64,000 nt of DNA. Source: Auanema rhodensis (Eukaryota > Animalia > Nematoda). This document shows positions 1 to 46,936 of the stretch, piece after piece. The position numbers were made by a program, and so were the translations under genes. The DNA lies in assembly GCA_964057225.1 (NCBI GenBank), contig OZ059900.1, positions 21,390,001-21,454,000 of the forward strand. Reading direction: 5' to 3'. Every line of letters starts with the position of its first letter. Position 1 is the first letter of the stretch. A model generated the notes under the pieces. It saw only the letters and a list, made by a program, of their open reading frames with translations. It was not told the DNA's origin and ran no database searches.

Positions 1-342
1 ACCTAGCTCAAAATTGTTCGTACAACGTCTAGTTCCACTTTCACGACAAAAAAACAGGGGTTAGAAAATTAAGGAAATTAGCATATTCTGAGGGCACGCC
101 CCTTATGGCTAATATTGATTAAATCGATTTTTGTTCATATGAGTAGTCAAATGCAACGAATTTCAGCGTGTCACATACTAAAATGAAGCATTTTACATGC
201 TGAACATTAGAAAAATACAAAAACACAGTATTTCCCATGAGAAATATTTTATTATGCTGGAAAACCAGTTTTTGGAAATTTCGCTGTAAACAAGGTTTTG
301 ACTTACGATTTCATGTGTTCAAACTCATGCAATGTCAATGAA
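1..342 (+). repeat. Representative 342-bp monomer (phase chosen arbitrarily at the window start)
   Basis: 1-342 is repeated at 343-684 with about 3 substitutions. I counted 115 G+C in 342 bases (about 34% GC). Confidence 0.97.
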
Positions 343-3300
343 ACCTAGCTCAAAATTGTTCGTACAACGTCTAGTTCCACTTTCACGACAAAAAAACAGG
401 GGTTAGAAAATTAAGGAAATTAGCATATTCTGAGGGCACGCCCCTTATGGCTAATATTGATTAAATCGATTTTTGTTCATATGAGTCGTCAAATGCAACG
501 AATTTCAGCGTGTTACATACTAAAATGAAGCATTTTACATGCTGAACACTAGAAAAATACAAAAACACAGTATTTCCCATGAGAAATATTTTATTATGCT
601 GGAAAACCAGTTTTTGGAAATTTCGCTGTAAACAAGGTTTTGACTTACGATTTCATGTGTTCAAACTCATGCAATGTCAATGAAACCTATCTCAAAATTG
701 TTCCTACAACGTCTAGTTCCACTTTCACGACAAAAAAACAGGGGTTAGAAAATTAAGGAAATTAGCATATTCTGAGGGCACGCCCCTTATGGCTAATATT
801 GATTAAATCGATTTTTGTTCATATGAGTCGTCAAATGAAACGAATTTCAGCGTGTTACATACTAAAATGAAGCATTTTACATGCTGAACACTATAAAAAT
901 ACAAAAACACAGTATTTCCCATGAGAAATATTTTATTATGCTGGAAAACCAGTTTTTGGAAATTTCGCTGTAAACAAGTTTTTGACTTACGATTTCATGT
1001 GTTGAAACTCATGCAATGTCAATGAAACCTAGCTCATAATTGTTCCTACAACGTCTAGTTCCACTTTCACGACAAAAAAACAGGGGTTAGAAAATTAAGG
1101 AAATTAGCATATTCTGAGGGCACGCCTCTTATGGCTAATATTGATTAAATCGATTTTTGTTCATATGAGTCGTCAAATGCAACGAATTTCAGCGTGTTAC
1201 ATACTAAAATGAAGCATTTTACATGCTGAACACTATAAAAATACAAAAACACAGTATTTCCCATGAGAAATATTTTATTATGCTGGAAAACCAGTTTTTG
1301 GAAATTTCGCTGTAAACAAGGTTTTGACTTACGATTTCATCTGTTCAAACTCATGCAATGTCAATGAAACCTAGCTCAAAATTGTTCGTACAACGTCTAG
1401 TTCCACTTTCACGACAAAAAAACAGGGGTTAGAAAATTAAGGAAATTAGCATATTCTGAGGGCACGCCCCTTATGGCTAATATTGATTAAATCGATTTTT
1501 GTTCATATGAGTAGTCAAATGCAACGAATTTCAGCGTGTTACATACTAAAATGAAGCATTTTACATGCTGAACACTAGAAAAATACAAAAACACAGTATT
1601 TCCCATGAGAAATATTTTATTATGCTGGAAAACCAGTTTTTGGAAATTTCGCTGTAAACAAGGTTTTGACTTACGATTTCATGTGTTCAAACTCATGCAA
1701 TGTCAATGAAACCTAGCTCAAAATTGTTCGTACAACGTCTAGTTCCACTTTCACGACAAAAAAACAGGGGTTAGAAAATTAAGGAAATTAGCATATTCTG
1801 AGGGCACGCCCCTTATGGCTAATATTGATTAAATCGATTTTTGTTCATATGAGTCGTCAAATGCAACGAATTTCAGCGTGTTACATACTAAAATGAAGCA
1901 TTTTACATGCTGAACACTAGAAAAATACAAAAACACAGTATTTCCCATGAGAAATATTTTATTATACTGGAAACCAGTTTTTGGAATTTTCGCTGTAAAC
2001 AAGGTTTTGACTTACGATTTCATGTGTTCAAACTCATGCAATGTCAATGAAACCTAGCTCAAAATTGTTCCTACAACGTCTAGTTCCACTTTCACGACAA
2101 AAAAACAGGGGTTAGAAAATTAAGGAAATTAGCATATTCTGAGGGCACGCCCTTTATGGCTAATATTGATTAAATCGATTTTTGTTCATATGGGTCGTCA
2201 AATGCAACGAATTTCAGCGTGTTACATACTAAAATGAAGCATTTTACATGCTGAACACTATAAAAATACAAAAACACAGTATTTCCCATGAGAAATATTT
2301 TATTATGCTGGAAAACCAGTTTTTGGAAATTTCGCTGTAAACAAGGTTTTGACTTACGATTTCATGTGTTCAAACTCATGCAATGTCAATGAAACCTAGC
2401 TCAAAATTGTTCCTACAACGTCTAGTTCCACTTTCACGACAAAAAAACAGGGGTTAGAAAATTAAGGAAATTAGCATATTCTGAGGGCACGCCCCTTATG
2501 GCTAATATTGATTAAATCGATTTTTGTTCATATGAGTAGTCAAATGCAACGAATTTCAGCGTGTTACATACTAAAATGAAGCATTTTACATGCTGAACAC
2601 TAGAAAAATACAAAAACACAGTATTTCCCATGAGAAATATTTTATTATGCTGGAAAACCAGTTTTTGGAAATTTCGCTGTAAACAAGGTTTTGACTTACG
2701 ATTTCATGTGTTCAAACTCATGCAATGTCAATGAAACCTAGCTCAAAACTGTTCCTACAACGTCTAGTTCCACTTTCACGACAAAAAAACAGGGGTTAGA
2801 AAATTAAGGAAATTAGCATATTCTGAGGGCACGCCCCTTATGGCTAATATTGATTAAATCGATTTTTGTTCATATGAGTCGTCAAATGCAACGAATTTCA
2901 GCGTGTTACATACTAAAATGAAGCATTTTACATGCTGAACACTATAAAAATACAAAAACACAGTATTTCCCATGAGAAATATTTTATTATGCTGGAAAAC
3001 CAGTTTTTGGAAATTTCGCTGTAAACAAGGTTTTGACTTACGATTTCATGTGTTCAAACTCATGCAATGTCAATGAAACCTAGCTCATAATTGTTCCTAC
3101 AACGTCTAGTTCCACTTTCACGACAAAAAAACAGGGGTTAGAAAATTAAGAAAATTAGCATATTCTGAGGGCACGCCTCTTATGGCTAATATTGATTAAA
3201 TCGATTTTTGTTCATATGAGTCGTCAAATGCAACGAATTTCAGCGTGTTACATACTAAAATGAAGCATTTTACATGCTGAACACTATAAAAATACAAAAA

Positions 3301-6300
3301 CACAGTATTTCCCATGAGAAATATTTTATTATGCTGGAAAACCAGTTTTTGGAAATTTCGCTGTAAACAAGGTTTTGACTTACGATTTCATGTGTTCAAA
3401 CTCATGCAATGTCAATGAAACCTAGCTCAAAATTGTTCGTACAACGTCTAGTTCCACTTTCACGACAAAAAAACAGGGGTTAGAAAATTAAGGAAATTAG
3501 CATATTCTGAGGGCACGCCCCTTATGGCTAATATTGATTAAATCGATTTTTGTTCATATGAGTCGTCAAATGCAACGAATTTCAGCGTGTTACATACTAA
3601 AATGAAGCATTTTACATGCTGAACACTAAAAAAATACAAAAACACAGTATTTCCCATGAGAAATATTTTATTATGCTGGAAAACCAGTTTTTGGAAATTT
3701 CGCTGTAAACAAGGTTTTGACTTACGATTTCATGTGTTCAAACTCATGCAATGTCAGTGAAACCTAGCTCAAAATTGTTCCTACAACGTCTAGTTCCACT
3801 TTCACGACAAAAAAACAGGGGTTAGAAAATTAAGGAAATTAGCATATTCTGAGGGCACGCCCTTTATGGCTAATATTGATTAAATCGATTTTTGTTCATA
3901 TGAGTCGTCAAATGCAACGAATTTCAGCGTGTTACATACTAAAATGAAGCATTTTACATGCTGAACACTATAAAAATACAAAAACACAGTATTTCCCATG
4001 AGAAATATTTTATTATGCTGGAAAACCAGTTTTTGGAAATTTCGCTGTAAACAAGGTTTTGACTTACGATTTCATGTGTTCAAACTCATGCAATGTCAAT
4101 GAAACCTAGCTCAAAATTGTTCCTACAACGTCTAGTTCCACTTTCACGACAAAAAAACAGGGGTTAGAAAATTAAGGAAATTAGCATATTCTGAGGGCAC
4201 GCCCTTTATGGCTAATATTGATTAAATCGATTTTTGTTCATATGAGTCGTCAAATGCAACGAATTTCAGCGTGTTACATACTAAAATGAAGCATTTTACA
4301 TGCTGAACACTATAAAAATACAAAAACACAGTATTTCCCATGAGAAATATTTTATTATGCTGGAAAATCAGTTTTTGGAAATTTCGCTGTAAACAAGGTT
4401 TTGACTTACAATTTCATGTGTTCAAACTCATGCAATGTCAATGAAACCTAGCTCAAAATTGTTCCTACAACGTCTAATTCCACTTTCACGACAAAAAAAC
4501 AGGGGTTAGAAAATTAAGGAAATTAGCATATTCTGAGGGCACGCCCCTTATGGCTAATATTGATTAAATCGATTTTTGTTCATATGAGTCGTGAAATGCA
4601 ACGAATTTCAGCGTGTTACATACTAAAATGAAGCATTTTACATGCTGAACACTAGAAAAATACAAAAACACAGTATTTCCCATGAGAAATATTTTATTAT
4701 GCTGGAAAACCAGTTTTTGGAAATTTCGCTGTAAACAAGGTTTTGACTTACGATTTCATGTGTTCAAACTCATGCAATGTCAATGAAACCTAGCTCAAAA
4801 TTGTTCGTACAACGTCTAGTTCCACTTTCACGACAAAAAAACAGGGGTTAGAAAATTAAGGAAGTTAGCATATTCTGAGGGCACGCCCCTTATGGCTAAT
4901 ATTGATTAAATCGATTTTTGTTCATATGAGTCGTCAAATGCAACGAATTTCAGCGTGTTACATACTAAAATGAAGCATTTTACATGCTGAACACTAGAAA
5001 AATACAAAAACACAGTATTTCCCATGAGAAATATTTTATTATGCTGGAAAACCAGTTTTTGGAAATTTCGCTGTAAACAAGGTTTTGACTTACGATTTCA
5101 TGTGTTCAAACTCATGCAATGTCAATGAAACCTAGCTCAAAATTGTTCCTACAACGTCTAGTTCCACTTTCACGACAAAAAAACAGGGGTTAGAAAATTA
5201 AGGAAATTAGCATATTCTGAGGGCACGCCCCTTATGGCTAATATTGATTAAATCGATTTTTGTTCATATGAGTCGTCAAATGCAACGAATTTCAGCGTGT
5301 TACATACTAAAATGAAGCATTTTACATGCTGAACACTAGAAAAATACAAAAACACAGTATTTCCCATGAGAAATATTTTATTATGCTGGAAAACCAGTTT
5401 TTGGAAATTTCGCTGTAAACAAGGTTTTGACTTACGATTTCATGTGTTCAAACTCATGCAATGTCAATGAAACCTAGCTGAAAATTGTTCCTACAACGTC
5501 TAGTTCCACTTTCACGACAAAAAAACAGGGGATAGAAAATTAAGGAAATTAGCATATTCTGAGGGCACGCCCCTTATGGCTAATATTGATTAAATCGATT
5601 TTTGTTCATATGAGTCGTCAAATGCAACGAATTTCAGCGTGTTACATACTAAAATGAAGCATTTTACATGCTGAACACTATAAAAATACAGAAACACAGT
5701 ATTTCCCATGAGAAATATTTTATTATGCTGGAAAACCAGTTTTTGGAAATTTCGCTGTAAACAAGGTTTTGACTTACGATTTCATGTGTTCAAACTCATG
5801 CAATGTCAATGAAACCTAGCTCAAAATTGTTCGTACAACGTCTAGTTCCACTTTCACGACAAAAAAACAGGGGTTAGAAAATTAAGGAAATTAGCATATT
5901 CTGAGGGCACGCCCCTTATGGCTAATATTGATTAAATCGATTTTTGTTCATATGAGTCGTCAAATGCAACGAATTTCAGCGTGTTACATACTAAAATGAA
6001 GCATTTTACATGCTGAACACTATAAAAATACAAAAACACAGTATTTCCCATGAGAAATATTTTATTATGCTGGAAAACAAGTTTTTGGAAATTTCGCTGT
6101 AAACAAGGTTTTGACTTACGATTTCATGTGTTCAAACTCATGCAATGTCAATGAAACCTAGCTCAAAATTGTTCGTACAACGTCTAGTTCCACTTTCACG
6201 ACAAAAAAACAGGGGTTAGAAAATTAAGGAAATTAGCATATTCTGAGGGCACGCCCCTTATGGCTAATATTGATTAAATCGATTTTTGTTCATATGAGTC

Positions 6301-6800
6301 GTCAAATGCAACGAATTTCAGCGTGTTACATACTAAAATGAAGCATTTTACATGCTGAACACTATAAAAATACAAAAACACAGTATTTCCCATGAGAAAT
6401 ATTTTATTATGCTGGAAAACCAGTTTTTGGAAATTTCGCTGTAAACAAGGTTTTGACTTACGATTTCATGTGTTCAAACTCATGCAATGTCAATGAAACC
6501 TAGCTCAACATTGTTCCTACAACGTCTAGTTCCACTTTCACGACAAAAAACAGGGGTTAGAAAATTAAGGAAATTAGCATATTCTGAGGGCACGCCCCTT
6601 ATGGCTAATATTGATTAAATCGATTTTTGTTCATATGAGTCGTCAAATGCAACGAATTTCAGCGTGTTACATACTAAAATGAAGCATTTTACATGCTGAA
6701 CACTAAAAAAATACAAAAACACAGTATTTCCCATGAGAAATATTTTATTATGCTGGAAAACCAGTTTTTGGAAATTTCGCTGTAAACAAGGTTTTGACTT
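1..6800 (+). repeat. Left forward-orientation block, 19 full monomers plus one truncated at monomer position 304
   Basis: Monomer starts run from 1 to 6498. The forward sequence stops at ...gttttgactt (6800) instead of continuing into acgatttc. Confidence 0.95.
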
Positions 6801-9800
6801 TTGAGCTAGGTTTCATTGACATTGCATGAGTTTGAACACATGAAATCGTAAGTCAAAACCTTGTTTACAGCGAAATTTCCAAAAACTGGTTTTCCAGCAT
6901 AATAAAATATTTCTCATGGGAAATACTGTGTTTTTGTATTTTTATAGTGTTCAGCATGTAAAATGCTTCATTTTAGTATGTAACACGCTGAAATTCGTTG
7001 CATTTGACGACTCATATGAACAAAAATCGATTTAATCAATATTAGCCATAAAGGGCGTGCCCTCAGAATATGCTAATTTCCTTAATTTTCTAACCCCTGT
7101 TTTTTTGTCGTGAAAGTGGAACTAGACGTTGTAGGAACAATTTTGAGCTAGGTTTCACTGACATTGCATGAGTTTGAACACATGAAATCGTAAGTCAAAA
7201 CCTTGTTTACAGCGAAATTTCCAAAAACTGGTTTTCCAGCATAATAAAATATTTCTCATGGGAAATACTGTGTTTTTGTATTTTTTTAGTGTTCAGCATG
7301 TAAAATGCTTCATTTTAGTATGTAACACGCTGAAATTCGTTGCATTTGACGACTCATATGAACAAAAATCGATTTAATCAATATTAGCCATAAGGGGCGT
7401 GCCCTCAGAATATGCTAATTTCCTTAATTTTCTAACCCCTGTTTTTTTGTCGTGAAAGTGGAACTAGACGTTGTACGAACAATTTTGAGCTAGGTTTCAT
7501 TGACATTGCATGAGTTTGAACACATGAAATCGTAAGTCAAAACCTTGTTTACAGCGAAATTTCCAAAAACTGGTTTTCCAGCATAATAAAATATTTCTCA
7601 TGGGAAATACTGTGTTTTTGTATTTTTCTAGTGTTCAGCATGTAAAATGCTTCATTTTAGTATGTAACACGCTGAAATTCGTTGCATTTGACGACTCATA
7701 TGAACAAAAATCGATTTAATCAATATTAGCCATAAGGGGCGTGCCCTCAGAATATGCTAATTTCCTTAATTTTCTAACCCCTGTTTTTTTGTCGTGAAAG
7801 TGGAACTAGACGTTGTAGGAACAATTTTGAGCTAGGTTTCATTGACATTGCATGAGTTTGAACACATGAAATCGTAAGTCAAAACCTTGTTTACAGCGAA
7901 ATTTCCAAAAACTGGTTTTCCAGCATAATAAAATATTTCTCATGGGAAATACTGTGTTTTTGTATTTTTCTAGTGTTCAGCATGTAAAATGCTTCATTTT
8001 AGTATGTAACACGCTGAAATTCGTTGCATTTGACGACTCATATGAACAAAAATCGATTTAATCAATATTAGCCATAAGGGGCGTGCCCTCAGAATATGCT
8101 AACTTCCTTAATTTTCTAACCCCTGTTTTTTTGTCGTGAAAGTGGAACTAGACGTTGTACGAACAATTTTGAGCTAGGTTTCATTGACATTGCATGAGTT
8201 TGAACACATGAAATCGTAAGTCAAAACCTTGTTTACAGCGAAATTTCCAAAAACTGGTTTTCCAGCATAATAAAATATTTCTCATGGGAAATACTGTGTT
8301 TTTGTATTTTTCTAGTGTTCAGCATGTAAAATGCTTCATTTTAGTATGTAACACGCTGAAATTCGTTGCATTTCACGACTCATATGAACAAAAATCGATT
8401 TAATCAATATTAGCCATAAGGGGCGTGCCCTCAGAATATGCTAATTTCCTTAATTTTCTAACCCCTGTTTTTTTGTCGTGAAAGTGGAATTAGACGTTGT
8501 AGGAACAATTTTGAGCTAGGTTTCATTGACATTGCATGAGTTTGAACACATGAAATTGTAAGTCAAAACCTTGTTTACAGCGAAATTTCCAAAAACTGAT
8601 TTTCCAGCATAATAAAATATTTCTCATGGGAAATACTGTGTTTTTGTATTTTTATAGTGTTCAGCATGTAAAATGCTTCATTTTAGTATGTAACACGCTG
8701 AAATTCGTTGCATTTGACGACTCATATGAACAAAAATCGATTTAATCAATATTAGCCATAAAGGGCGTGCCCTCAGAATATGCTAATTTCCTTAATTTTC
8801 TAACCCCTGTTTTTTTGTCGTGAAAGTGGAACTAGACGTTGTAGGAACAATTTTGAGCTAGGTTTCATTGACATTGCATGAGTTTGAACACATGAAATCG
8901 TAAGTCAAAACCTTGTTTACAGCGAAATTTCCAAAAACTGGTTTTCCAGCATAATAAAATATTTCTCATGGGAAATACTGTGTTTTTGTATTTTTATAGT
9001 GTTCAGCATGTAAAATGCTTCATTTTAGTATGTAACACGCTGAAATTCGTTGCATTTGACGACTCATATGAACAAAAATCGATTTAATCAATATTAGCCA
9101 TAAAGGGCGTGCCCTCAGAATATGCTAATTTCCTTAATTTTCTAACCCCTGTTTTTTTGTCGTGAAAGTGGAACTAGACGTTGTAGGAACAATTTTGAGC
9201 TAGGTTTCACTGACATTGCATGAGTTTGAACACATGAAATCGTAAGTCAAAACCTTGTTTACAGCGAAATTTCCAAAAACTGGTTTTCCAGCATAATAAA
9301 ATATTTCTCATGGGAAATACTGTGTTTTTGTATTTTTTTAGTGTTCAGCATGTAAAATGCTTCATTTTAGTATGTAACACGCTGAAATTCGTTGCATTTG
9401 ACGACTCATATGAACAAAAATCGATTTAATCAATATTAGCCATAAGGGGCGTGCCCTCAGAATATGCTAATTTCCTTAATTTTCTAACCCCTGTTTTTTT
9501 GTCGTGAAAGTGGAACTAGACGTTGTACGAACAATTTTGAGCTAGGTTTCATTGACATTGCATGAGTTTGAACACATGAAATCGTAAGTCAAAACCTTGT
9601 TTACAGCGAAATTTCCAAAAACTGGTTTTCCAGCATAATAAAATATTTCTCATGGGAAATACTGTGTTTTTGTATTTTTATAGTGTTCAGCATGTAAAAT
9701 GCTTCATTTTAGTATGTAACACGCTGAAATTCGTTGCATTTGACGACTCATATGAACAAAAATCGATTTAATCAATATTAGCCATAAGAGGCGTGCCCTC

Positions 9801-9909
9801 AGAATATGCTAATTTTCTTAATTTTCTAACCCCTGTTTTTTTGTCGTGAAAGTGGAACTAGACGTTGTAGGAACAATTATGAGCTAGGTTTCATTGACAT
9901 TGCATGAGT
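6799..9909 (-). repeat. Inverted satellite block, 3,111 bp, about 9.1 monomers
   Basis: The sequence reads ttttgagctaggtttcattgacattgcatgag..., the reverse complement of the monomer, from 6799 until ...tgcatgagt at 9909. Confidence 0.97.
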
Positions 9910-12900
9910 GAGAAATATTTTATTATGCTGGAAAACCAGTTTTTGGAAATTTCGCTGTAAACAAGGTTTTGACTTACGATTTCATGTGTTCAAACTCATG
10001 CAATGTCAATGAAACCTAGCTCAAAATTGTTCCTACAACGTCTAGTTCCACTTTCACGACAAAAAACAGGGGTTAGAAAATTAAGGAAATTAGCATATTC
10101 TGAGGGCACGCCCCTTATGGCTAATATTGATTAAATCGATTTTTGTTCATATGAGTCGTCAAATGCAACGAATTTCAGCGTGTTACATACTAAAATGAAG
10201 AATTTTACATGCTGAACACTAGAAAAATACAAAAACACAGTATTTCCCATGAGAAATATTTTATTATGCTGGAAAACCAGTTTTTGGAAATTTCGCTGTA
10301 AACAAGGTTTTGACTTACGATTTCATGTGTTCAAACTCATGCAATGTCAATGAAACCTAGCTCAAAATTGTTCCTACAACGTCTAGTTCCACTTTCACGA
10401 CAAAAAAACAGGGGTTAGAAAATTAAGGAAATTAGCATATTCTGAGGGCACGCCCCTTATGGCTAATATTGATTAAATCGATTTTTGTTCATATGAGTCG
10501 TCAAATGCAACGAATTTCAGCGTGTTACACACTAAAATGAAGCATTTCACATGCTGAACACTAGAAAAATACAAAAACACAGTATTTCCCATGAGAAATA
10601 TTTTATTATGCTGGAAAACCAGTTTTTGGAAATTTCGCTGTAAACAAGGTTTTGACTTACGATTTCATGTGTTCAAACTCATGCAATGTCAATGAAACCT
10701 AGCTCAAAATTGTTCCTACAACGTCTAGTTCCACTTTCACGACAAAAAAACGGGGGTTAGAAAATTAAGGAAATTAGCATATTCTGAGGGCACGCCCCTT
10801 ATGGCTAATATTGATTAAATCGATTTTTGTTCATATGAGTCGTCAAATGCAACGAATTTCAGCGTGTTACATACTAAAATGAAGCATTTTACATGCTGAA
10901 CACTAGAAAAATACAAAAACACAGTATTTCTCATGAGAAATATTTTATTATGCTGGAAAACCAGTTTTTGGAAATTTCGCTGTAAACAAGGTTTTGACTT
11001 ACGATTTCATGTGTTCAAACTCATGCAATGTCAATGAAACCTAGCTCAAAATTGTTTGTACAACGTCTAGTTCCACTTTCACGACAAAAAAACAGGGGTT
11101 AGAAAATTAAGGAAATTAGCATATTCTGAGGGCACGCCCCTTATGGCTAATATTGATTAAATCGATTTTTGTTCATATGAGTCGTCAAATGCAACGAATT
11201 TCAGCGTGTTACATACTAAAATGAAGCATTTCACATGCTGAACACTAGAAAAATACAAAAACACAGTATTTCCCATGAGAAATATTTTATTATGCTGGAA
11301 AACCAGTTTTTGGAAATTTCGCTGTAAACAAGTTTTTGACTTACGATTTCATGTGTTCAAACTCATGCAATGTCAATGAAACCTAGCTCATAATTGTTTG
11401 TACAACGTCTAGTTCCACTTTCACGACAAAAAAACAGGGGTTAGAAAATTAAGGAAATTAGCATATTCTGAGGGCACGCCCCTTATGGCTAATATTGATT
11501 AAATCGATTTTTGTTCATATGAGTCGTCAAATGCAACGAATTTCAGCGTGTTACATACTAAAATGAAGCATTTCACATGCTGAACACTAGAAAAATACAA
11601 AAACACAGTATTTCCCATGAGAAATATTTTATTATGCTGGAAAACCAGTTTTTGGAAATTTCGCTGTAAACAAGTTTTTGACTTACGATTTCATGTGTTC
11701 AAACTCATGCAATGTCAATGAAACCTAGCTCATAATTGTTCCTACAACGTCTAGTTCCACTTTCACGACAAAAAAACAGGGGTTAGAAAATTAAGGAAAT
11801 TAGCATATTCTGAGGGCACGCCCCTTATGGCTAATATTGATTAAATCGATTTTTGTTCATATGAGTCGTCAAATGCAACGAATTTCAGCGTGTTACATAC
11901 TAAAATGAAGCATTTCACATGCTGAACACTAGAAAAATACAAAAACACAGTATTTCCCATGAGAAATATTTTATTATGCTGGAAAACCAGTTTTTGGAAA
12001 TTTCGCTGTAAACAAGTTTTTGACTTACGATTTCATGTGTTCAAACTCATGCAATGTCAATGAAACCTAGCTCATAATTGTTCCTACAACGTCTAGTTCC
12101 ACTTTCACGACAAAAAAACAGGGGTTAGAAAATTAAGGAAATTAGCATATTCTGAGGGCACGCCTCTTATGGCTAATATTGATTAAATCGATTTTTGTTC
12201 ATATGAGTAGTCAAATGCAACGAATTTCAGCGTGTTACATACTAAAATGAAGCATTTTACATGCTGAACACTAGAAAAATACAAAAACACAGTATTTCCC
12301 ATGAGAAATATTTTATTATGCTGGAAAACCAGTTTTTGGAAATTTCGCTGTAAACAAGGTTTTGACTTACGATTTCATGTGTTCAAACTCATGCAATGTC
12401 AATGAAACCTAGCTCAAAATTGTTCGTACAACGTCTTGTTCCACTTTCACGACAAAAAAACAGGGGTTAGAAAATTAAGGAAATTAGCATATTCTGAGGG
12501 CACGCCCCTTATGGCTAATATTGATTAAATCGATTTTTGTTCATATGAGTCGTGAAATGCAACGAATTTCAGCGTGTTACATACTAAAATGAAGCATTTT
12601 ACATGCTGAACACTAGAAAAATACAAAAACACAGTATTTCCCATGAGAAATATTTTATTATGCTGGAAAACCAGTTTTTGGAAATTTCGCTGTAAACAAG
12701 GTTTTGACTTACGATTTCATGTGTTCAAACTCATGCAATGTCAATGAAACCTAGCTCAAAATTGTTCGTACAACGTCTAGTTCCACTTTCACGACAAAAA
12801 AACAGGGGTTAGAAAATTAAGGAAGTTAGCATATTCTGAGGGCACGCCTCTTATGGCTAATATTGATTAAATCGATTTTTGTTCATATGAGTCGTCAAAT

Positions 12901-15142
12901 GCAACGAATTTCAGCGTGTTACATACTAAAATGAAGCATTTTACATGCTGAACACTAGAAAAATACAAAAACACAGTATTTCCCATGAGAAATATTTTAT
13001 TATGCTGGAAAACCAGTTTTTGGAAATTTCGCTGTAAACAAGGTTTTGACTTACGATTTCATGTGTTCAAACTCATGCAATGTCAATGAAACCTAGCTCA
13101 AAATTGTTCGTACAACGTCTAGTTCCACTTTCACGACAAAAAAACAGGGGTTTGAAAATTAAGGAAATTAGCATATTCTGAGGGCACGCCCCTTATGGCT
13201 AATATTGATTAAATCGATTTTTGTTCATATGAGTCGTCAAATGCAACGAATTTCAGCGTGTTACACACTAAAATGAAGCATTTCACATGCTGAACACTAG
13301 AAAAATACAAAAACACAGTATTTCCCATGAGAAATATTTTATTATGCTGGAAAACCAGTTTTTGGAAATTTCGCTGTAAACAAGGTTTTGACTTACGATT
13401 TCATGTGTTCAAACTCATGCAATGTCAATGAAACCTAGCTCAAAATTGTTCCTACAACGTCTAGTTCCACTTTCACGACAAAAAAACGGGGGTTAGAAAA
13501 TTAAGGAAATTAGCATATTCTGAGGGCACGCCCCTTATGGCTAATATTGATTAAATCGATTTTTGTTCATATGAGTCGTCAAATGCAACGAATTTCAGCG
13601 TGTTACATACTAAAATGAAGCATTTTACATGCTGAACACTAGAAAAATACAAAAACACAGTATTTCTCATGAGAAATATTTTATTATGCTGGAAAACCAG
13701 TTTTTGGAAATTTCGCTGTAAACAAGGTTTTGACTTACGATTTCATGTGTTCAAACTCATGCAATGTCAATGAAACCTAGCTCAAAATTGTTTGTACAAC
13801 GTCTAGTTCCACTTTCACGACAAAAAAACAGGGGTTAGAAAATTAAGGAAATTAGCATATTCTGAGGGCACGCCCCTTATGGCTAATATTGATTAAATCG
13901 ATTTTTGTTCATATGAGTCGTCAAATGCAACGAATTTCAGCGTGTTACATACTAAAATGAAGCATTTCACATGCTGAACACTAGAAAAATACAAAAACAC
14001 AGTATTTCCCATGAGAAATATTTTATTATGCTGGAAAACCAGTTTTTGGAAATTTCGCTGTAAACAAGTTTTTGACTTACGATTTCATGTGTTCAAACTC
14101 ATGCAATGTCAATGAAACCTAGCTCATAATTGTTCCTACAACGTCTAGTTCCACTTTCACGACAAAAAAACAGGGGTTAGAAAATTAAGGAAATTAGCAT
14201 ATTCTGAGGGCACGCCTCTTATGGCTAATATTGATTAAATCGATTTTTGTTCATATGAGTAGTCAAATGCAACGAATTTCAGCGTGTTACATACTAAAAT
14301 GAAGCATTTTACATGCTGAACACTAGAAAAATACAAAAACACAGTATTTCCCATGAGAAATATTTTATTATGCTGGAAAACCAGTTTTTGGAAATTTCGC
14401 TGTAAACAAGGTTTTGACTTACGATTTCATGTGTTCAAACTCATGCAATGTCAATGAAACCTAGCTCAAAATTGTTCGTACAACGTCTAGTTCCACTTTC
14501 ACGACAAAAAAACAGGGGTTAGAAAATTAAGGAAATTAGCATATTCTGAGGGCACGCCCCTTATGGCTAATATTGATTAAATCGATTTTTGTTCATATGA
14601 GTCGTGAAATGCAACGAATTTCAGCGTGTTACATACTAAAATGAAGCATTTTACATGCTGAACACTAGAAAAATACAAAAACACAGTATTTCCCATGAGA
14701 AATACTTTATTATGCTGGAAAACCAGTTTTTGGAAATTTCGCTGTAAACAAGGTTTTGACTTACGATTTCATGTGTTCAAACTCATGCAATGTCAATGAA
14801 ACCTAGCTCAAAATTGTTCGTACAACGTCTAGTTCCACTTTCACGACAAAAAAACAGGGGTTAGAAAATTAAGGAAGTTAGCATATTCTGAGGGCACGCC
14901 TCTTATGGCTAATATTGATTAAATCGATTTTTGTTCATATGAGTCGTCAAATGCAACGAATTTCAGCGTGTTACATACTAAAATGAAGCATTTTACATGC
15001 TGAACACTAGAAAAATACAAAAACACAGTATTTCCCATGAGAAATATTTTATTATGCTGGAAAACCAGTTTTTGGAAATTTCGCTGTAAACAAGGTTTTG
15101 ACTTACGATTTCATGTGTTCAAACTCATGCAATGTCAATGAA

Positions 15143-24600: not shown

Positions 24601-25745
24601 CACAGTATTTCCCATGAGAAATATTTTATTATGCTGGAAAACCAGTTTTTGGAAATTTCGCTGTAAACAAGGTTTCGACTTACGATTTCATGTGTTCAAA
24701 CTCATGCAATGTCAATGAAACCTAGCTCAAAATTGTTTCTACAACGTCTTGTTCCACTTTCACGACAAAAAAACAGGGGTTAGAAAATTAAGGAAATTAG
24801 CATATTCTGAGGGCACGCCCCTTATGGCTAATATTGATTAAATCGATTTTTGTTCATATGAGTCGTCAAATGCAACGAATTTCAGCGTGTTACATACTAA
24901 AATGAAGCATTTTACATGCTGAACACTAAAAAAATACAAAAACACAGTATTTCCCATGAGAAATAATTTATTATGCTGGAAAACCAGTTTTTGGAAATTT
25001 CGCTGTAAACAAGGTTTTGACTTACGATTTCATGTGTTCAAACTCATGCAATGTCAATGAAACCTAGCTCAAAATTGTTCCTACAACGTCTAGTTCCACT
25101 TTCACGACAAAAAAACAGGGGTTAGAAAATTAAGGAAATTAGCATATTCTGAGGGCACGCCCTTTATGGCTAATATTGATTAAATCGATTTTTGTTCATA
25201 TGAGTCGTCAAATGCAACGAATTTCAGCGTGTTACATACTAAAATGAAGCATTTTACATGCTGAACACTATAAAAATACAAAAACACAGTATTTCCCATG
25301 AGAAATATTTTATTATGCTGGAAAACCAGTTTTGGGAAATTTCGCTGTAAACAAGGTTTTGACTTACAATTTCATGTGTTCAAACTCATGCAATGTCAAC
25401 GAAACCTAGCTCAAAATTGTTCCTACAACGTCTAATTCCACTTTCACGACAAAAAAACAGGGGTTAGAAAATTAAGGAAATTAGCATATTCTGAGGGCAC
25501 GCCCCTTATGGCTAATATTGATTAAATCGATTTTTGTTCATATGAGTTGTGAAATGCAACGAATTTCAGCGTGTTACATACTAAAATGAAGCATTTTACA
25601 TGCTGAACACTAGAAAAATACAAAAACACAGTATTTCCCATGAGAAATATTTTATTATGCTGGAAAACCAGTTTTGGGAAATTTCGCTGTAAACAAGGTT
25701 TTGACTTACAATTTCATGTGTTCAAACTCATGCAATGTCAATGAA
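20957..25745 (+). repeat. 7-mer tandem duplication, about 2,394 bp x2
   Basis: The monomer with caacatct + gcagttt occurs at 21641 and 24036, and the ttggga/tacaat/caacgaa monomer at 22667 and 25062, in the same order. Confidence 0.82.
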
Positions 25746-28138
25746 ACCTAGCTCAAAATTGTTCCTACAACGTCTAATTCCACTTTCACGACAAAAAAAC
25801 AGGGGTTAGAAAATTAAGGAAATTAGCATATTCTGAGGGCACGCCCCTTATGGCTAATATTGATTAAATCGATTTTTGTTCATATGAGTCGTGAAATGCA
25901 ACGAATTTCAGCGTGTTACATACTAAAATGAAGCATTTTACATGCTGAACACTAGAAAAATACAAAAACACAGTATTTCCCATGAGAAATATTTTATTAT
26001 GCTGGAAAACCAGTTTTTGGAAATTTCGCTGTAAACAAGGTTTTGACTTACGATTTCATGTGTTCAAACTCATGCAATGTCAATGAAACCTAGCTCAAAA
26101 TTGTTCGTACAACGTCTAGTTCCACTTTCACGACAAAAAAACAGGGGTTAGAAAATTAAGGAAGTTAGCATATTCTGAGGGCACGCCCCTTATGGCTAAT
26201 ATTGATTAAATCGATTTTTGTTCATATGAGTAGTCAAATGCAACGAATTTTAGCGTGTTACATACTAAAATGAAGCATTTTACATGCTGAACACTAGAAA
26301 AATACAAAAACACAGTATTTCCCATGAGAAATATTTTATTATGCTGGAAAACCAGTTTTTGGAAATTTCGCTGTAAACAAGGTTTTGACTTACGATTTCA
26401 TGTGTTCAAACTCATGCAATGTCAATGAAACCTAGCTCAAAATTGTTCGTACAACGTCTAGTTCCACTTTCACGACAAAAAAACAGGGGTTAGAAAATTA
26501 AGGAAGTTAGCATATTCTGAGGGCACGCCCCTTATGGCTAATATTGATTAAATCGATTTTTGTTCATATGAGTAGTCAAATGCAACGAATTTTAGCGTGT
26601 TACATACTAAAATGAAGCATTTTACATGCTGAACACTAGAAAAATACAAAAACACAGTATTTCCCATGAGAAATATTTTATTATGCTGGAAAACCAGTTT
26701 TTGGAAATTTCGCTGTAAACAAGGTTTCGACTTACGATTTCATGTGTTCAAACTCATGCAATGTCAATGAAACCTAGCTCAAAATTGTTTCTACAACGTC
26801 TAGTTCCACTTTCACGACAAAAAACAGGGGTTAGAAAATTAAGGAAATTAGCATATTCTGAGGGCACGCCCCTTATGGCTAATATTGATTAAATCGATTT
26901 TTGTTCATATGAGTCGTCAAATGCAACGAATTTCAGCGTGTTACATACTAAAATGAAGCATTTTACATGCTGAACACTAGAAAAATACAAAAACACAGTA
27001 TTTCCCATGAGAAATATTTTATTATGCTGGAAAACCAGTTTTTGGAAATTTCGCTGTAAACAAGGTTTTGACTTACGATTTCATGTGTTCAAACTCATGC
27101 AATGTCAATGAAACCTAGCTCAAAATTGTTCGTACAACGTCTAATTCCACTTTCACGACAAAAAAACAGGGGTTAGAAAATTAAGGAAATTAGCATATTC
27201 TGAGGGCACGCCCCTTATGGCTAATATTGATTAAATCGATTTTTGTTCATATGAGTCGTCAAATGCAACGAATTTCAGCGTGTTACATACTAAAATGAAG
27301 CATTTTACATGCTGAACACTAGAAAAATACAAAAACACAGTATTTCCCATGAGAAATATTTTATTATGCTGGAAAACCAGTTTTTGGAAATTTCGCTGTA
27401 AACAAGGTTTTGACTTACGATTTCATGTGTTCAAACTCATGCAATGTCAATGAAACCTAGCTCAAAATTGTTCCTACAACGTCTAGTTCCACTTTCACGA
27501 CAAAAAAACAGGGGTTAGAAAATTAAGGAAATTAGCATATTCTGAGGGCACGCCCCTTATGGCTAATATTGATTAAATCGATTTTTGTTCATATGAGTCG
27601 TCAAATGCAACGAATTTCAGCGTGTTACATACTAAAATGAAGCATTTTACATGCTTAACACTAGAAAAATACAAAAACACAGTATTTCCCATGAGAAATA
27701 TTTTATTATGCTGGAAAACCAGTTTTTGGAAATTTCGCTGTAAACAAGGTTTCGACTTACGATTTCATGTGTTCAAACTCATGCAATGTCAATGAAACCT
27801 AGCTCAAAATTGTTTCTACAACGTCTAGTTCCACTTTCACGACAAAAAAACAGGGGTTAGAAAATTAAGGAAATTAGCATATTCTGAGGGCACGCCCCTT
27901 ATGGCTAATATTGATTAAATCGATTTTTGTTCATATGAGTCGTCAAATGCAACGAATTTCAGCGTGTTACATACTAAAATGAAGCATTTTACATGCTGAA
28001 CACTAGAAAAATACAAAAACACAGTATTTCCCATGAGAAATATTTTATTATGCTGGAAAACCAGTTTTTGGAAATTTCGCTGCAAACAAGGTTTTGACTT
28101 ACGATTTCATGTGTTCAAACTCATGCAATGTCAATGAA

Positions 28139-31100
28139 ACCTAGCTCAAAATTGTTCGTACAACGTCTAATTCCACTTTCACGACAAAAGAACAGGGGTT
28201 AGAAAATTAAGGAAATTAGCATATTCTGAGGGCACGCCCCTTATGGCTAATATTGATTAAATCGATTTTTGTTCATATGAGTCGTCAAATGCAACGAATT
28301 TCAGCGTGTTACATACTAAAATGAAGCATTTTACATGCTGAACACTAGAAAAATACAAAAACACAGTATTTCCCATGAGAAATATTTTATTATGCTGGAA
28401 AACCAGTTTTTGGAAATTTCGCTGTAAACAAGGTTTTGACTTACGATTTCATGTGTTCAAACTCATGCAATGTCAATGAAACCTAGCTCAAAATTGTTCG
28501 TACAACGTCTAGTTCCACTTTCACGACAAAAAAACAGGGGTTAGAAAATTAAGGAAATTAGCATATTCTGAGGGCACGCCCCTTATGGCTAATATTGATT
28601 AAATCGATTTTTGTTCATATGAGTCGTCAAATGCAACAAATTTCAGCGTGTTACATACTAAAATGAAGCATTTTACAAGCTGAACACTAGAAAAATACAA
28701 AAACACAGTTTTTCCCATGAGAAATATTTTATTATGCTGGAAAACCAGTTTTTGGAAATTTCGCTGTAAACAAGGTTTTGACTTACGATTTCATGTGTTC
28801 AAACTCATGCAATGTCAATGAAACCTAGCTCAAAATTGTTCGTACAACGTCTAGTTCCACTTTCACGACAAAAAAACAGGGGTTAGAAAATTAAGGAAAT
28901 TAGCATATTCTGAGGGCACGCCCCTTATGGCTAATATTGATTAAATCGATTTTTGTTCATATGAGTCGTCAAATGCAACAAATTTCAGCGTGTTACATAC
29001 TAAAATGAAGCATTTTACAAGCTGAACACTAGAAAAATACAAAAACACAGTTTTTCCCATGAGAAATATTTTATTATGCTGGAAACCAGTTTTTGGAATT
29101 TTCGCTGTAAACAAGGTTTTGACTTACGATTTCATGTGTTCAAACTCATGCAATGTCAATGAAACCTAGCTCAAAATTGTTCGTACAACGTCTAGTTCCA
29201 CTTTCACGACAAAAAAACAGGGGTTAGAAAATTTAGGAAATTAGCATATTCTGAGGGCACGCCCCTTATGGCTAATATTGATTAAATCGATTTTGGTTCA
29301 TATGAGTCGTCAAATGCAACGAATTTCAGCGTGTTACATACTAAAATGAAGCATTTTACATGCTGAACACTAGAAAAATACAAAACACAGTTTTTCCCAT
29401 GAGAAATATTTTATTATGCTGGAAAACCAGTTTTTGGAAATTTCGCTGTAAACAAGGTTTTGACTTACGATTTCATGTGTTCAAACTCATGCAATGTCAA
29501 TGAAACCTAGCTCAAAATTGTTCGTACAACGTCTAGTTCCACTTTCACGACAAAAAAACAGGGGTTAGAAAATTTAGGAAATTAGCATATTCTGAGGGCA
29601 CGCCCCTTATGGCTAATATTGATTAAATCGATTTTGGTTCATATGAGTCGTCAAATGCAACGAATTTCAGCGTGTTACATACTAAAATGAAGCATTTTAC
29701 ATGCTGAACACTAGAAAAATACAAAACACAGTTTTTCCCATGAGAAATATTTTATTATGCTGGAAAACCAGTTTTTGGAAATTTCGCTGTAAACAAGGTT
29801 TTGACTTACGATTTCATGTGTTCAAACTCATGCAATGTCAATGAAACCTAGCTCAAAATTGTTCGTACAACGTCTAGTTCCACTTTCACGACAAAAAAAC
29901 AGGGGTTAGAAAATTTAGGAAATTAGCATATTCTGAGGGCACGCCCCTTATGGCTAATATTGATTAAATCGATTTTTGTTCATATGAGTCGTCAAAAGCA
30001 ACGAATTTCAGCGTGTTACATACTAAAATGAAGTATTTTACATGCTGAACACTAGAAAAATACAAAAACACAGTATTTCCCATGAGAAATATTTTATTAT
30101 GCTGGAAAACCAGTTTTTGGAAATTTCGCTGTAAACAAGGTTTTGACTTACGATTTCATGTGTTCAAACTCATGCAATGTCAATGAAACCTTGCTCAAAA
30201 TTGTTCCTACAACGTCTAGTTCCACTTTCACGACAAAAAAACAGGGGTTAGAAAATTAAGGAAATTAGCATATTCTGAGGGCACGCCCCTTATGGCTAAT
30301 ATTGATTAAATCGATTTTTGTTCATATGAGTCGTCAAATGAAACGAATTTCAGGGTGTTACATACTAAAATGAAGCATTTTACATGCTGAACACTATAAA
30401 AATACAAAAACACAGTATTTCCCATGAGAAATATTTTATTATGCTGGAAAACCAGTTTTTGGAAAGTTCGCTGTAAACAAGGTTTTGACTTACGATTTCA
30501 TGTGTTCAAACTCATGCAATGTCAATGAAACCTAGCTCAAAATTGTTCCTACAACGTCTAATTCCACTTTCACGACAAAAAAACAGGGGTTAGAAAATTA
30601 AGGAAATTAGCATATTCTGAGGGCACGCCCCTTATGGCTAATATTGATTAAATCGATTTTTGTTCATATGAGTCGTCAAATGAAACGAATTTCAGCGTGT
30701 TACATACTATAATGGAGTATTTTACATGCTGAACACTAGAAAAATACAAAAACACAGTATTTCCCATGAGAAATATTTTATTATGCTGGAAAACCAGTTT
30801 TTGGAAATTTCGCTGTAAACAAGGTTTTGACTTACGATTTCATGTGTTCAAACTCATGCAATGTCAATGAAACCTAGCTCAAAATTGTTCCTACAACGTC
30901 TAGTTCCACTTTCACGACAAAAAACAGGGGTTAGAAAATTAAGGAAATTAGCATATTCTGAGGGCACGCCCCTTATGGCTTATATTGATTAAATCGATTT
31001 TTGTTCATATGAGTCGTCAAATGCAACGAATTTCAGCGTGTTACATACTAAAATGAAGCATTTTACATGCTGAACACTAGAAAAATACAAAAACACAGTA

Positions 31101-33945
31101 TTTCCCATGAGAAATATTTTATTATGCTGGAAAACCAGTTTTTGGAAATTTCGCTGCAAACAAGGTTTTGACTTACGATTTCATGTGTTCAAACTCATGC
31201 AATGTCAATGAAACCTAGCTCAAAATTGTTCGTACAACGTCTAATTCCACTTTCACGACAAAAGAACAGGGGTTAGAAAATTAAGGAAATTAGCATATTC
31301 TGAGGGCACGCCCCTTATGGCTAATATTGATTAAATCGATTTTTGTTCATATGAGTCGTCAAATGCAACGAATTTCAGCGTGTTACATACTAAAATGAAG
31401 CATTTTACATGCTGAACACTAGAAAAATACAAAAACACAGTATTTCCCATGAGAAATATTTTATTATGCTGGAAAACCAGTTTTTGGAAATTTCGCTGTA
31501 AACAAGGTTTTGACTTACGATTTCATGTGTTCAAACTCATGCAATGTCAATGAAACCTAGCTCAAAATTGTTCGTACAACGTCTAGTTCCACTTTCACGA
31601 CAAAAAAACAGGGGTTAGAAAATTAAGGAAATTAGCATATTCTGAGGGCACGCCCCTTATGGCTAATATTGATTAAATCGATTTTTGTTCATATGAGTCG
31701 TCAAATGCAACAAATTTCAGCGTGTTACATACTAAAATGAAGCATTTTACAAGCTGAACACTAGAAAAATACAAAAACACAGTTTTTCCCATGAGAAATA
31801 TTTTATTATGCTGGAAAACCAGTTTTTGGAAATTTCGCTGTAAACAAGGTTTTGACTTACGATTTCATGTGTTCAAACTCATGCAATGTCAATGAAACCT
31901 AGCTCAAAATTGTTCGTACAACGTCTAGTTCCACTTTCACGACAAAAAAACAGGGGTTAGAAAATTAAGGAAATTAGCATATTCTGAGGGCACGCCCCTT
32001 ATGGCTAATATTGATTAAATCGATTTTTGTTCATATGAGTCGTCAAATGCAACAAATTTCAGCGTGTTACATACTAAAATGAAGCATTTTACAAGCTGAA
32101 CACTAGAAAAATACAAAAACACAGTTTTTCCCATGAGAAATATTTTATTATGCTGGAAACCAGTTTTTGGAATTTTCGCTGTAAACAAGGTTTTGACTTA
32201 CGATTTCATGTGTTCAAACTCATGCAATGTCAATGAAACCTAGCTCAAAATTGTTCGTACAACGTCTAGTTCCACTTTCACGACAAAAAAACAGGGGTTA
32301 GAAAATTTAGGAAATTAGCATATTCTGAGGGCACGCCCCTTATGGCTAATATTGATTAAATCGATTTTGGTTCATATGAGTCGTCAAATGCAACGAATTT
32401 CAGCGTGTTACATACTAAAATGAAGCATTTTACATGCTGAACACTAGAAAAATACAAAACACAGTTTTTCCCATGAGAAATATTTTATTATGCTGGAAAA
32501 CCAGTTTTTGGAAATTTCGCTGTAAACAAGGTTTTGACTTACGATTTCATGTGTTCAAACTCATGCAATGTCAATGAAACCTAGCTCAAAATTGTTCGTA
32601 CAACGTCTAGTTCCACTTTCACGACAAAAAAACAGGGGTTAGAAAATTTAGGAAATTAGCATATTCTGAGGGCACGCCCCTTATGGCTAATATTGATTAA
32701 ATCGATTTTTGTTCATATGAGTCGTCAAAAGCAACGAATTTCAGCGTGTTACATACTAAAATGAAGTATTTTACATGCTGAACACTAGAAAAATACAAAA
32801 ACACAGTATTTCCCATGAGAAATATTTTATTATGCTGGAAAACCAGTTTTTGGAAATTTCGCTGTAAACAAGGTTTTGACTTACGATTTCATGTGTTCAA
32901 ACTCATGCAATGTCAATGAAACCTTGCTCAAAATTGTTCCTACAACGTCTAGTTCCACTTTCACGACAAAAAAACAGGGGTTAGAAAATTAAGGAAATTA
33001 GCATATTCTGAGGGCACGCCCCTTATGGCTAATATTGATTAAATCGATTTTTGTTCATATGAGTCGTCAAATGAAACGAATTTCAGGGTGTTACATACTA
33101 AAATGAAGCATTTTACATGCTGAACACTATAAAAATACAAAAACACAGTATTTCCCATGAGAAATATTTTATTATGCTGGAAAACCAGTTTTTGGAAAGT
33201 TCGCTGTAAACAAGGTTTTGACTTACGATTTCATGTGTTCAAACTCATGCAATGTCAATGAAACCTAGCTCAAAATTGTTCCTACAACGTCTAATTCCAC
33301 TTTCACGACAAAAAAACAGGGGTTAGAAAATTAAGGAAATTAGCATATTCTGAGGGCACGCCCCTTATGGCTAATATTGATTAAATCGATTTTTGTTCAT
33401 ATGAGTCGTCAAATGAAACGAATTTCAGCGTGTTACATACTATAATGGAGTATTTTACATGCTGAACACTAGAAAAATACAAAAACACAGTATTTCCCAT
33501 GAGAAATATTTTATTATGCTGGAAAACCAGTTTTTGGAAATTTCGCTGTAAACAAGGTTTTGACTTACGATTTCATGTGTTCAAACTCATGCAATGTCAA
33601 TGAAACCTAGCTCAAAATTGTTCCTACAACGTCTAGTTCCACTTTCACGACAAAAAACAGGGGTTAGAAAATTAAGGAAATTAGCATATTCTGAGGGCAC
33701 GCCCCTTATGGCTTATATTGATTAAATCGATTTTTGTTCATATGAGTCGTCAAATGCAACGAATTTCAGCGTGTTACATACTATAATGGAGTATTTTACA
33801 TGCTGAACACTAGAAAAATACAAAAACACAGTATTTCCCATGAGAAATATTTTATTATGCTGGAAAACCAGTTTTTGGAAATTTCGCTGTAAACAAGGTT
33901 TTGACTTACGATTTCATGTGTTCGAACTCATGCAATGTCAATGAA
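28139..33945 (+). repeat. 8-mer tandem duplication; the first copy has one extra monomer
   Basis: The aaagaac monomer occurs at 28139 and 31213. Each is followed by the same series: caacaaa/acaagc x2, atttagg, ccttgc/cagggt, ctataatggagt, gcttat. The extra monomer is at 29505. Confidence 0.85.
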
Positions 33946-46300: not shown

Positions 46301-46936
46301 AAAAAACAGGGGTTAGAAAATTAAGGAAATTAGCATATTCTGAGGGCACGCCCCTTATGGCTAATATTGATTAAATCGATTTTTGTTCATATGAGTCGTG
46401 AAATGCAACGAATTTCAGCGTGTTACATACTAAAATGAAGCATTTTACATGCTGAACACTAGAAAAATACAAAAACACAGTATTTCCCATGAGAAATATT
46501 TTATTATGCTGGAAAACCAGTTTTTGGAAATTTCGCTGTAAACAAGGTTTTGACTTACGATTTCATGTGTTCAAACTCATGCAATGTCAATGAAACCTAG
46601 CTCAAAATTGTTCGTACAACGTCTAGTTCCACTTTCACGACAAAAAAACAGGGGTTAGAAAATTAAGGAAGTTAGCATATTCTGAGGGCACGCCCCTTAT
46701 GGCTAATATTGATTAAATCGATTTTTGTTCATATGAGTAGTCAAATGCAACGAATTTTAGCGTGTTACATACTAAAATGAAGCATTTTACATGCTGAACA
46801 CTAGAAAAATACAAAAACACAGTATTTCCCATGAGAAATATTTTATTATGCTGGAAAACCAGTTTTTGGAAATTTCGCTGTAAACAAGGTTTTGACTTAC
46901 GATTTCATGTGTTCAAACTCATGCAATGTCAATGAA
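37363..46936 (+). repeat. 14-mer tandem duplication, 4,787 bp x2, each copy containing a nested trimer duplication
   Basis: Private variants cagttttacc, tttagaaa, acttagt, tcttatt and acttaaat recur at a 4,787-bp offset (monomers at 37363 and 42150). Confidence 0.88.

Follow-up and report, generated by a model that had tools for sequence, protein, structure and literature searches.

A very recent inverted duplication composed of two overlapping local pieces in a 342-bp satellite array of Auanema rhodense

Strand switches are common in the satellite arrays of complete assemblies, and their origin can rarely be read there, donor and copy having diverged. FoSTeS/MMBIR denotes replicative template switching that gives complex rearrangements, and in DUP-TRP/INV-DUP a pair of inverted repeats mediates one junction and the donor becomes triplicated with its middle copy inverted. 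Human fold-back inverted duplications have spacers of 766-70,466 bp (median 3,428 bp) and microhomology of 2-8 bp (Hermetz et al. 2014, PMC3907307). Break repair in yeast produces templated insertions, some of them combining two pieces of a single locus, with one end primed by microhomology and the other captured by end joining (Yu et al. 2024, PMC11724301).

In Auanema rhodense, XT-2 has been described as an X-terminal, germline-restricted tandem repeat whose family forms multi-megabase blocks; the same genome preprint provides a 27-nt FISH probe for XT-2 and invokes in-register slippage for satellite arrays (bioRxiv 10.64898/2026.08.27.747507). The window analyzed here, meaning the whole 64-kb stretch of DNA, consists entirely of a 342-bp satellite of this nematode with a self-similarity of 98-99%. 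The XT-2 probe matched the window 173 times at no more than 1 mismatch, mostly exactly, with a chance expectation of none. Because the published probe sequence occurs about once per monomer, the satellite is identified by its sequence as the XT-2 repeat.

Two exact inverted copies with retained donors

An orientation map based on 15-mers revealed a sole reversed stretch in the 64 kb, at 6801-9900, and its bounds were refined to 6799-9909. The AT skew changes sign over this stretch, and the forward array resumes after 9909 and continues for 54 kb further. The donors, copies and joins (J1 to J3) are listed below, with the forward monomers numbered (M9, M10 and so on).

3058-5479, forward strand: donor piece A, the exact reverse-complement match of 7488-9909, composed of the last 20 nt of M9, M10-M16 and the first 8 nt of M17
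3428-4116, forward strand: donor piece B, nested in A, composed of M11, M12 and the first 13 nt of M13; sequence identity with the block continues upstream to 3288 (3288-4116 equals the reverse complement of 6799-7627)
4117-6798, forward strand: forward spacer of 2,682 bp from the upper end of donor B to J1
5480-6798, forward strand: uncopied part of the spacer
6799-6800: J1, forward to inverted, with a 2-nt TT that is compatible with the forward array running on as well as with the reversed donor
6799-7487, reverse strand: inverted copy of donor B, with the variants of M11 and M12
7488-7627, reverse strand: J2, a hidden in-register switch within 140 bp that are identical in both donors, seen as overlapping exact matches
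7488-9909, reverse strand: inverted copy of donor A, with the variants of M10-M16 in mirror order
9909-9910: J3, inverted to forward, with 1-nt microhomology (T at 9909)
9910-9975, forward strand: start of the resumed forward array, monomer phases 238-303

Alignment across the window showed that the reverse complement of 7488-9909 equals 3058-5479 over 2,422 bp with 0 mismatches, while the runner-up register had 26; a better donor for this part was sought and none was found in the window. The remaining part, 6799-7487, is the reverse complement of 3428-4116 (689 bp, 0 mismatches; runner-up, 6), and the maximal exact match of this smaller piece extends to 829 bp. When the full length of 3,111 bp was aligned as one unit, the best ungapped fit of its reverse complement was to 3058-6168 with 9 mismatches, followed by a second register with 24 and typical registers with 35-41. 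All 9 mismatches, including 7487 versus 5480, lie within 6799-7487, and the 9 sites at which 5480-6168 differs from the block correspond to the background level. A single colinear mirror of 3058-6168 was thus ruled out, since the mismatches are all in the final 689 bp, and these match 3428-4116 exactly. Alignment of 185 monomers gave the block order M10, M11, M12, M13, M14, M15, M16, M11, M12.

The block therefore consists of two exact inverted copies of overlapping upstream pieces, and the donors are retained. A simple in-place inversion was ruled out because both donors are still present in the forward array, as had been claimed by a sequence-only reading of this DNA, which had also anticipated the mirror of 3058-5479 in 7488-9909. 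That reading expected the whole of 6799-9909 to align to 3058-5479; this held for 7488-9909, whereas 6799-7487 derives from 3428-4116 and adds a third, internal junction. Each monomer variant that it named for M10-M16 was present in mirror order in the 185-monomer alignment. Their description as private applies to the window and not to the genome, in which their short-read k-mer depths are about 500-5,000.

The forward pieces are the source and the reversed block the copy, because the donor pieces are embedded in phase, seamlessly and without junctions in the forward array, and the out-of-phase joins, together with the register jump, are confined to the block. Copy and donors show 0 differences over 3,111 bp, and because of this identity the inverted duplication is very recent, in agreement with the earlier proposal of a young copy free of new mutations. 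The distance from the donors to the insertion site is 0.7-3.7 kb; this locality, like the uniqueness of the donors, was established within a 64-kb window of a multi-megabase array, and an identical donor may exist elsewhere in it.

Junction anatomy and comparison with described rearrangements

At J1 the forward array breaks off at monomer phase 301-303, and the block follows the donor from 4116/4114. At J2, the stretch of 140 bp reads alike at 5340-5479 and 3288-3427, and the copy shifts back by 2,052 bp, which is exactly 6 monomers. At J3 the match to the donor ends at 3058 (phase 322), with the forward array re-entered at phase 238. For random forward/reverse joins in the XT-2 satellite, the probability of at least 2 nt of microhomology is 0.19 and that of at least 1 nt is 0.47. 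The 2-nt microhomology at J1 and the 1-nt microhomology at J3 are accordingly at chance level and do not discriminate between mechanisms, and plain end joining would account for the two outer joins just as well.

Because the left flank already ends with the phases 238-303 found at 9910-9975, the event involved either a target duplication of 64-67 bp or a deletion of 275-278 bp plus whole monomers. The window contains no empty-site paralogue by which duplication and deletion could be told apart, and no regular higher-order repeat. Each monomer forms an imperfect palindrome with zero spacer, the center of which lies 1-2 nt from the re-entry point of J3. A hairpin or palindrome as the cause of the breakpoints was rejected, since the DNA at all four breakpoints folds no better than shuffled sequences (z from -1.05 to +0.54). 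No known RNA family was found at the gathering threshold in 6000-10800.

Like the human fold-back inverted duplications, the locus has an inverted copy near a retained original, with a spacer of 2,682 bp and a 2-nt inverted microhomology at the join of spacer and inversion, both within the published ranges, though 19% of random joins reach that length of microhomology (Hermetz et al. 2014, PMC3907307). The classical tract, in contrast, is long and accompanied by terminal deletion, translocation or ring formation via a dicentric intermediate, whereas the tract here stops after 3.1 kb, contains an internal register slip and is followed by the forward array. In a dicentric or hairpin product the inverted arm would run on, with loss or replacement of the distal sequence; at this locus the tract ends at 9909 with forward array beyond it.

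The resemblance to FoSTeS/MMBIR lies in three junctions in cis, templates within a few kb, originals kept, copy number gained and minimal homology at the out-of-register joins. It differs in that the microhomology (2 nt and 1 nt) does not exceed chance and that J2 uses 140 bp of perfect monomer homology, and in that the sequence is a nematode satellite rather than unique sequence, known from one assembly and not from a parent/offspring pair. With DUP-TRP/INV-DUP the block shares the forward-inverted-forward order and an inverted middle that is an extra copy. It was not assigned to that class, however, since there is no pre-existing pair of inverted repeats and the forward segment on the right does not repeat the donor again: outside the block no 15-mer in the window is common to the forward and reverse sets, and the sequence from 9910 on has no exact donor in the window. 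Because these 15-mer sets share nothing, pre-existing inverted repeats are excluded as substrates of a recombination. The fold-back insertions of yeast are similar in that sequence adjacent to a break is inserted inverted at that break, but local ones are mostly 5-34 bp, and the 3,111 bp observed here are about a hundredfold longer (PMC11724301).

Probable local templated synthesis and its rivals

The block is probably the product of a single event, local and recent, in which DNA was synthesized in inverted orientation from a template. A double-strand break or a collapsed or stalled fork would have interrupted the forward XT-2 array at about 6798-6800, and the 3' end may then have primed on an opposite-sense template 2.7 kb back, at 4116, via the 2-nt microhomology. 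Priming could have occurred by intrastrand fold-back, in which case the spacer 4117-6798 would be the loop, or by a switch to a sister or lagging-strand template. Copying would have proceeded from 4116 down to about 3428, made an in-register slip of six monomers to about 5479 and continued down to 3058, after which the new end would have rejoined the original forward molecule at 9910 with the 1-nt microhomology. One event rather than several is the parsimonious reading. We infer that its origin was replicative rather than the ligation of a free fragment, and synthesis may have run from left to right; a mirrored order that began at the right-hand end would fit just as well. The sequence-only reading had offered both FoSTeS/MMBIR-like template switching and reinsertion of a copied fragment; local templated synthesis is favored over re-insertion of a fragment because the donor lies so close to the insertion site in a multi-megabase array, because the copy is inverted with a 2.7-kb spacer, and because a second piece of the same locus is joined via an in-register slip of six monomers. 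Fragment capture, an older block refreshed by conversion and an assembly error are each less likely than local templated synthesis.

It is unlikely that end joining inserted a free array fragment, linear or derived from a circle and already carrying the six-monomer join, into a break in reverse orientation, even though such capture would suit outer joins with just 2 nt and 1 nt of chance-level microhomology and the join of 5479 to 3428, at exactly 6 monomers, is what a circle formed by in-register recombination would be expected to contain. In a multi-megabase array, a fragment taken at random would seldom originate less than 4 kb from where it lands, a locality judged within the 64-kb window. 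A rolling-circle or eccDNA origin was rejected, since neither a 6- nor a 7-monomer circle has a period that fits M10-M16 followed by M11-M12: M10 and M16 differ at 4 alignment columns, and the monomer after M16 is M11, not M10. Also improbable, and slightly more so, is a history of two or more steps, in which a simple inverted templated insertion was followed by an event inside the block that produced the six-monomer jump, for instance misaligned gene conversion with the forward array as its source, or unequal exchange combined with a deletion. In-register rearrangements are indeed very frequent in the array: exact direct repeats of at least 1 kb, with offsets near integer monomer counts, cover 74% of the window. 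M13-M16 occur only in the forward array, however, so that the second step would again need inverted copying from the same donor, and, both pieces showing 0 differences, none of the steps could be older than the others.

Gene conversion is known to homogenize inverted repeats that share a chromatid, as in sex-chromosome palindromes, and the block could in principle be an older one whose content was lately overwritten from nearby forward monomers, with old joins and young identity. This is very unlikely, because the whole block must then have been converted, in two different registers and with zero unconverted sites in 3,111 bp; the informative sites nearest the ends lie no more than 30 bp from J3 and 145 bp from J1. 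The least probable reading is an artefact of assembly or library, namely a chimeric long read or a misjoin in near-identical satellite. The high self-similarity of the array would favor it, as would the fact that, among the unitig rows listed, read evidence covers J3 alone of the three joins. Against it, false overlaps cannot make an inverted block when no 15-mer is common to both orientations, and missing-adapter products are spacer-less palindromes that run to the end of the read, whereas here there is a spacer and a return to the forward array. The typical HiFi read is likely longer than 3.1 kb, and single reads should thus span the block. Germline-restricted repeats had only about 29-fold HiFi coverage, which was counted for the artefact (bioRxiv 10.64898/2026.08.27.747507). 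The read check used Logan unitigs of 40-60 nt, among the listed rows of which a 52-nt short-read unitig from run X1 only, with a depth of 12.3 compared with about 500-5,000 for array k-mers, lies exactly across J3 at 9885-9936 with 0 differences; its flanks of 25 and 27 nt are below the 31+31 rule for spanning support, and run X1 may share its source strain with the assembly.

Meaning for germline-restricted arrays

The patch belongs to a known kind of copying or repair accident and reveals neither a new mechanism nor a function; it shows no sign of function, and the satellite is non-coding and germline-restricted. As a scar, it introduced a strand switch and lengthened the satellite by about nine monomers. 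With donor and copy intact and identical, and three joins placed to within 0-140 bp, the locus provides a clean natural example of a tandem array gaining an inverted block, and it illustrates that monomers can be reordered within the same event, via a six-monomer slip. J1 and J3 constitute PCR-sized markers for the rate at which germline-restricted satellites change between strains.

It is conceivable, if rather doubtful, that the germline-only arrays of Auanema rhodense are remodeled largely by break-induced, slip-prone templated synthesis, of which this patch would be one example. If so, one event would flip the strand, reorder monomers and change copy number together, beyond what in-register slippage does, and such repair would proceed at an unusually high rate in DNA that is discarded from the soma.

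Inverted block and its forward donors

The 15-mer orientation map showed a single reversed stretch in the window, at about 6801-9900, and no 15-mer was common to the forward and reverse sets. The reverse complement of the whole block aligned to 3058-6168 over its full length, ungapped and with 9 mismatches, as compared with 24 in the next register and 35-41 in typical registers. All nine mismatches were confined to 6799-7487. The segments referred to below are as follows.

6799-9909, reversed: the block, or patch
3058-5479, plus strand: donor piece A
3428-4116, plus strand: donor piece B
4117-6798: spacer
6799-6800: J1, forward/inverted join
7488-7627: J2, internal switch
9909-9910: J3, inverted/forward join

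The sequence-only reading had proposed that 7488-9909 mirrors 3058-5479, and this proved exact: the reverse complement matched donor piece A over 2,422 bp with 0 mismatches, the next best match in the window having 26. Its expectation that the entire block would align there was correct for this part only; the remainder, 6799-7487, was the exact reverse complement of donor piece B (689 bp, 0 mismatches; next best in the window, 6). Descent of 6799-7487 from 5480-6168 with later divergence was rejected. Both exact matches include the 140 bp of 7488-7627, and the donor-to-donor switch is placed somewhere within this interval. There the copy moves back in register by 2,052 bp, a distance of exactly six monomers.

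In an alignment of 185 monomers, numbered from M1 in the forward array, the minus strand of the block gave the order M10 M11 M12 M13 M14 M15 M16 M11 M12, with 20 nt of M9 and 13 nt of M13 in addition. Every block variant agreed with its donor monomer, so the order of upstream variants described from sequence alone was upheld. As monomer pairs differed at a mean of 6.3 sites and only 1.3% of pairs were identical, exact identity across nine ordered monomers is, by this comparison, far beyond chance.

The forward donor pieces are in phase with the forward array and end without discontinuity. The block, in contrast, has an out-of-phase join on either side and a register jump within it; we infer that it was copied from the forward sequence. 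A simple inversion was excluded, since the donor sequence remains in phase and unbroken in the forward array; the earlier view of a templated inverted copy therefore held. The claim that it is very recent also stood: 0 differences in 3,111 bp would place the event at less than about 2.4 × 10^5 generations ago (95%), on the assumption of 2 × 10^-9 mutations per site per generation, similar in magnitude to published Caenorhabditis rates. The apparent youth of the block could exceed its true youth through conversion.

Array context and read evidence

Tandem Repeats Finder returned a single array of a 342-bp unit over all 64,000 bases (187 copies, 96% matches), with a GC content of about 34%. The 27-nt FISH probe "XT-2_488 (X-elim)", given in a preprint on programmed DNA elimination in Auanema rhodense (bioRxiv 10.64898/2026.08.27.747507), had 173 matches in the window at up to 1 mismatch, mostly exact, with 0 expected by chance. 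Its occurrence about once per monomer identifies the window as XT-2, the X-terminal germline-restricted repeat. The same preprint ascribes repeat growth to replication slippage and does not discuss inversions inside arrays.

Exact direct repeats of at least 1 kb covered 74% of the window and 97% of 22001-64000, reaching 5,874 bp with zero differences and with offsets near integer multiples of the monomer (about 76, 60, 16 and 14 monomers within 22001-64000). Two examples from that region are listed here.

29441-35314 = 55418-61291: exact direct repeat
24677-29635 = 45184-50142: exact direct repeat

Recent in-register amplification is thus routine in this array, and in 22001-64000 the repeats point to very recent amplification of multi-kb segments. 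No direct repeat of at least 1 kb within the window involved 1-6798, whose sole exact duplicate is the inverted patch. Monomers of 341 bp (32 of 185, e.g. 1711-2051 and 10014-10354; frequent past 26000) owe their length to the loss of one base at one of a few fixed columns, and occur in blocks tracking the large exact duplications. The flanks carried different sets of common variants, by column 210T and 102T in 1-6798 and 194C, 295T and 18T in 9910-14000; the patch may lie where one variant domain of the array gives way to another, which would be compatible with monomer loss at the event.

The satellite was present, as Logan contigs, in 14 public runs, with unitigs of 40-60 nt when placed at ≥99% on 6300-10400. 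Among the matches listed, run X1, which has Illumina adapters in loose ends, contained a 52-nt unitig on 9885-9936 without a difference, spanning J3 with 25 and 27 nt per side, below the criterion of 31 + 31. Its depth was 12.3 versus 500-5,000 for the other block unitigs of X1 among those matches, as expected of a junction present in one or a few copies. Among the matches listed, no unitig spanned a junction in X4, X5 or X6, and none spanned J1 in any run. X1 unitigs over window-rare or window-private variants (9188-9238 and 6488-6538) had depths of 500-700 versus 12 for the J3 unitig. With depths of hundreds to thousands, variants that look private within the window must be repeated at many other places in the multi-megabase array.

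Joins and origin of the block

At J1, the forward array stops with "...GGTTTTGAC" at 6798, and the TT that follows is what either continuing forward or entering the reversed donor at 4116 would give. At J3, the reversed donor exits at 3058, the T at 9909 is compatible with both sides, and the forward array restarts at monomer phase 238. Random forward/reverse joins in this satellite have microhomology of at least 2 nt in 19% of cases and at least 1 nt in 47%; the microhomology at J1 and J3 is real but uninformative. Judged from the phases on the two sides, 301-303 where the left flank stops and 237-238 where the right one begins again, the event was either a target duplication of 64-67 bp or a deletion of 275-278 bp plus whole monomers. 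The window contained no exact donor for 9910 onward, nor did it hold an empty-site paralogue or a regular higher-order repeat that would choose between duplication and deletion.

Each monomer carries a 32-nt imperfect zero-spacer palindrome (75% complementary, phase 221-252, e.g. 5351-5382), the centre of which is 1-2 nt off the restart phase at J3. DNA folding at this element was no better than shuffles (z = -1.05), Rfam gave no family match, and a hairpin or palindrome as the cause of the breakpoints was tested and not supported.

Local templated synthesis in inverted orientation is favoured by several features: the donors are 0.7-3.7 kb from the landing site, the copy is inverted, a 2,682-bp spacer parts it from its donor, two pieces of one locus are joined via an in-register slip, and the return to the original molecule is at most one monomer phase from departure. 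A resected break end would fold back intrastrand, or a nascent strand would switch to a sister or lagging-strand template; low-processivity copying with one slip among identical monomers would follow, and the second end would be captured with minimal homology. Synthesis could have started at J1 or J3, and its template could have been the chromatid itself, the sister or the homologue.

A free fragment captured at a break would explain the blunt-like joins but not the locality of the donors as judged within the window, and is improbable; a simple rolling-circle product was excluded by monomer order. Slightly less probable again is a multi-step history, which requires repeated inverted copying from one donor. 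Refreshment of an old inverted block by gene conversion would have had to cover the block completely, in two registers and reaching as near as 30 bp to a join, and we give it little credence. Assembly error is unlikely, given two orientations without common 15-mers, a block whose 3.1 kb a typical HiFi read would probably exceed, and the presence of J3 in short reads. The J3 unitig argues against a long-read chimera; X1 is possibly the source strain and does not count as independent population evidence.

Relation to known rearrangements

The patch behaves like a product of fold-back or template-switch repair. Its spacer and microhomology fall inside the ranges published for human fold-back duplications (PMC3907307), and templated inverted insertions at breaks, mostly of 5-34 bp and some made of two pieces from a single locus, have been described in yeast (PMC11724301). 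Its inverted arm stops and no distal sequence is lost, which sets it apart from a classical fold-back; nor is it a DUP-TRP/INV-DUP, as mediating inverted repeats are absent and the right flank does not repeat the donor. With the loose description of FoSTeS/MMBIR it agrees in structure only. The patch has no apparent function, and is an unusually clean example of an already known kind of event.
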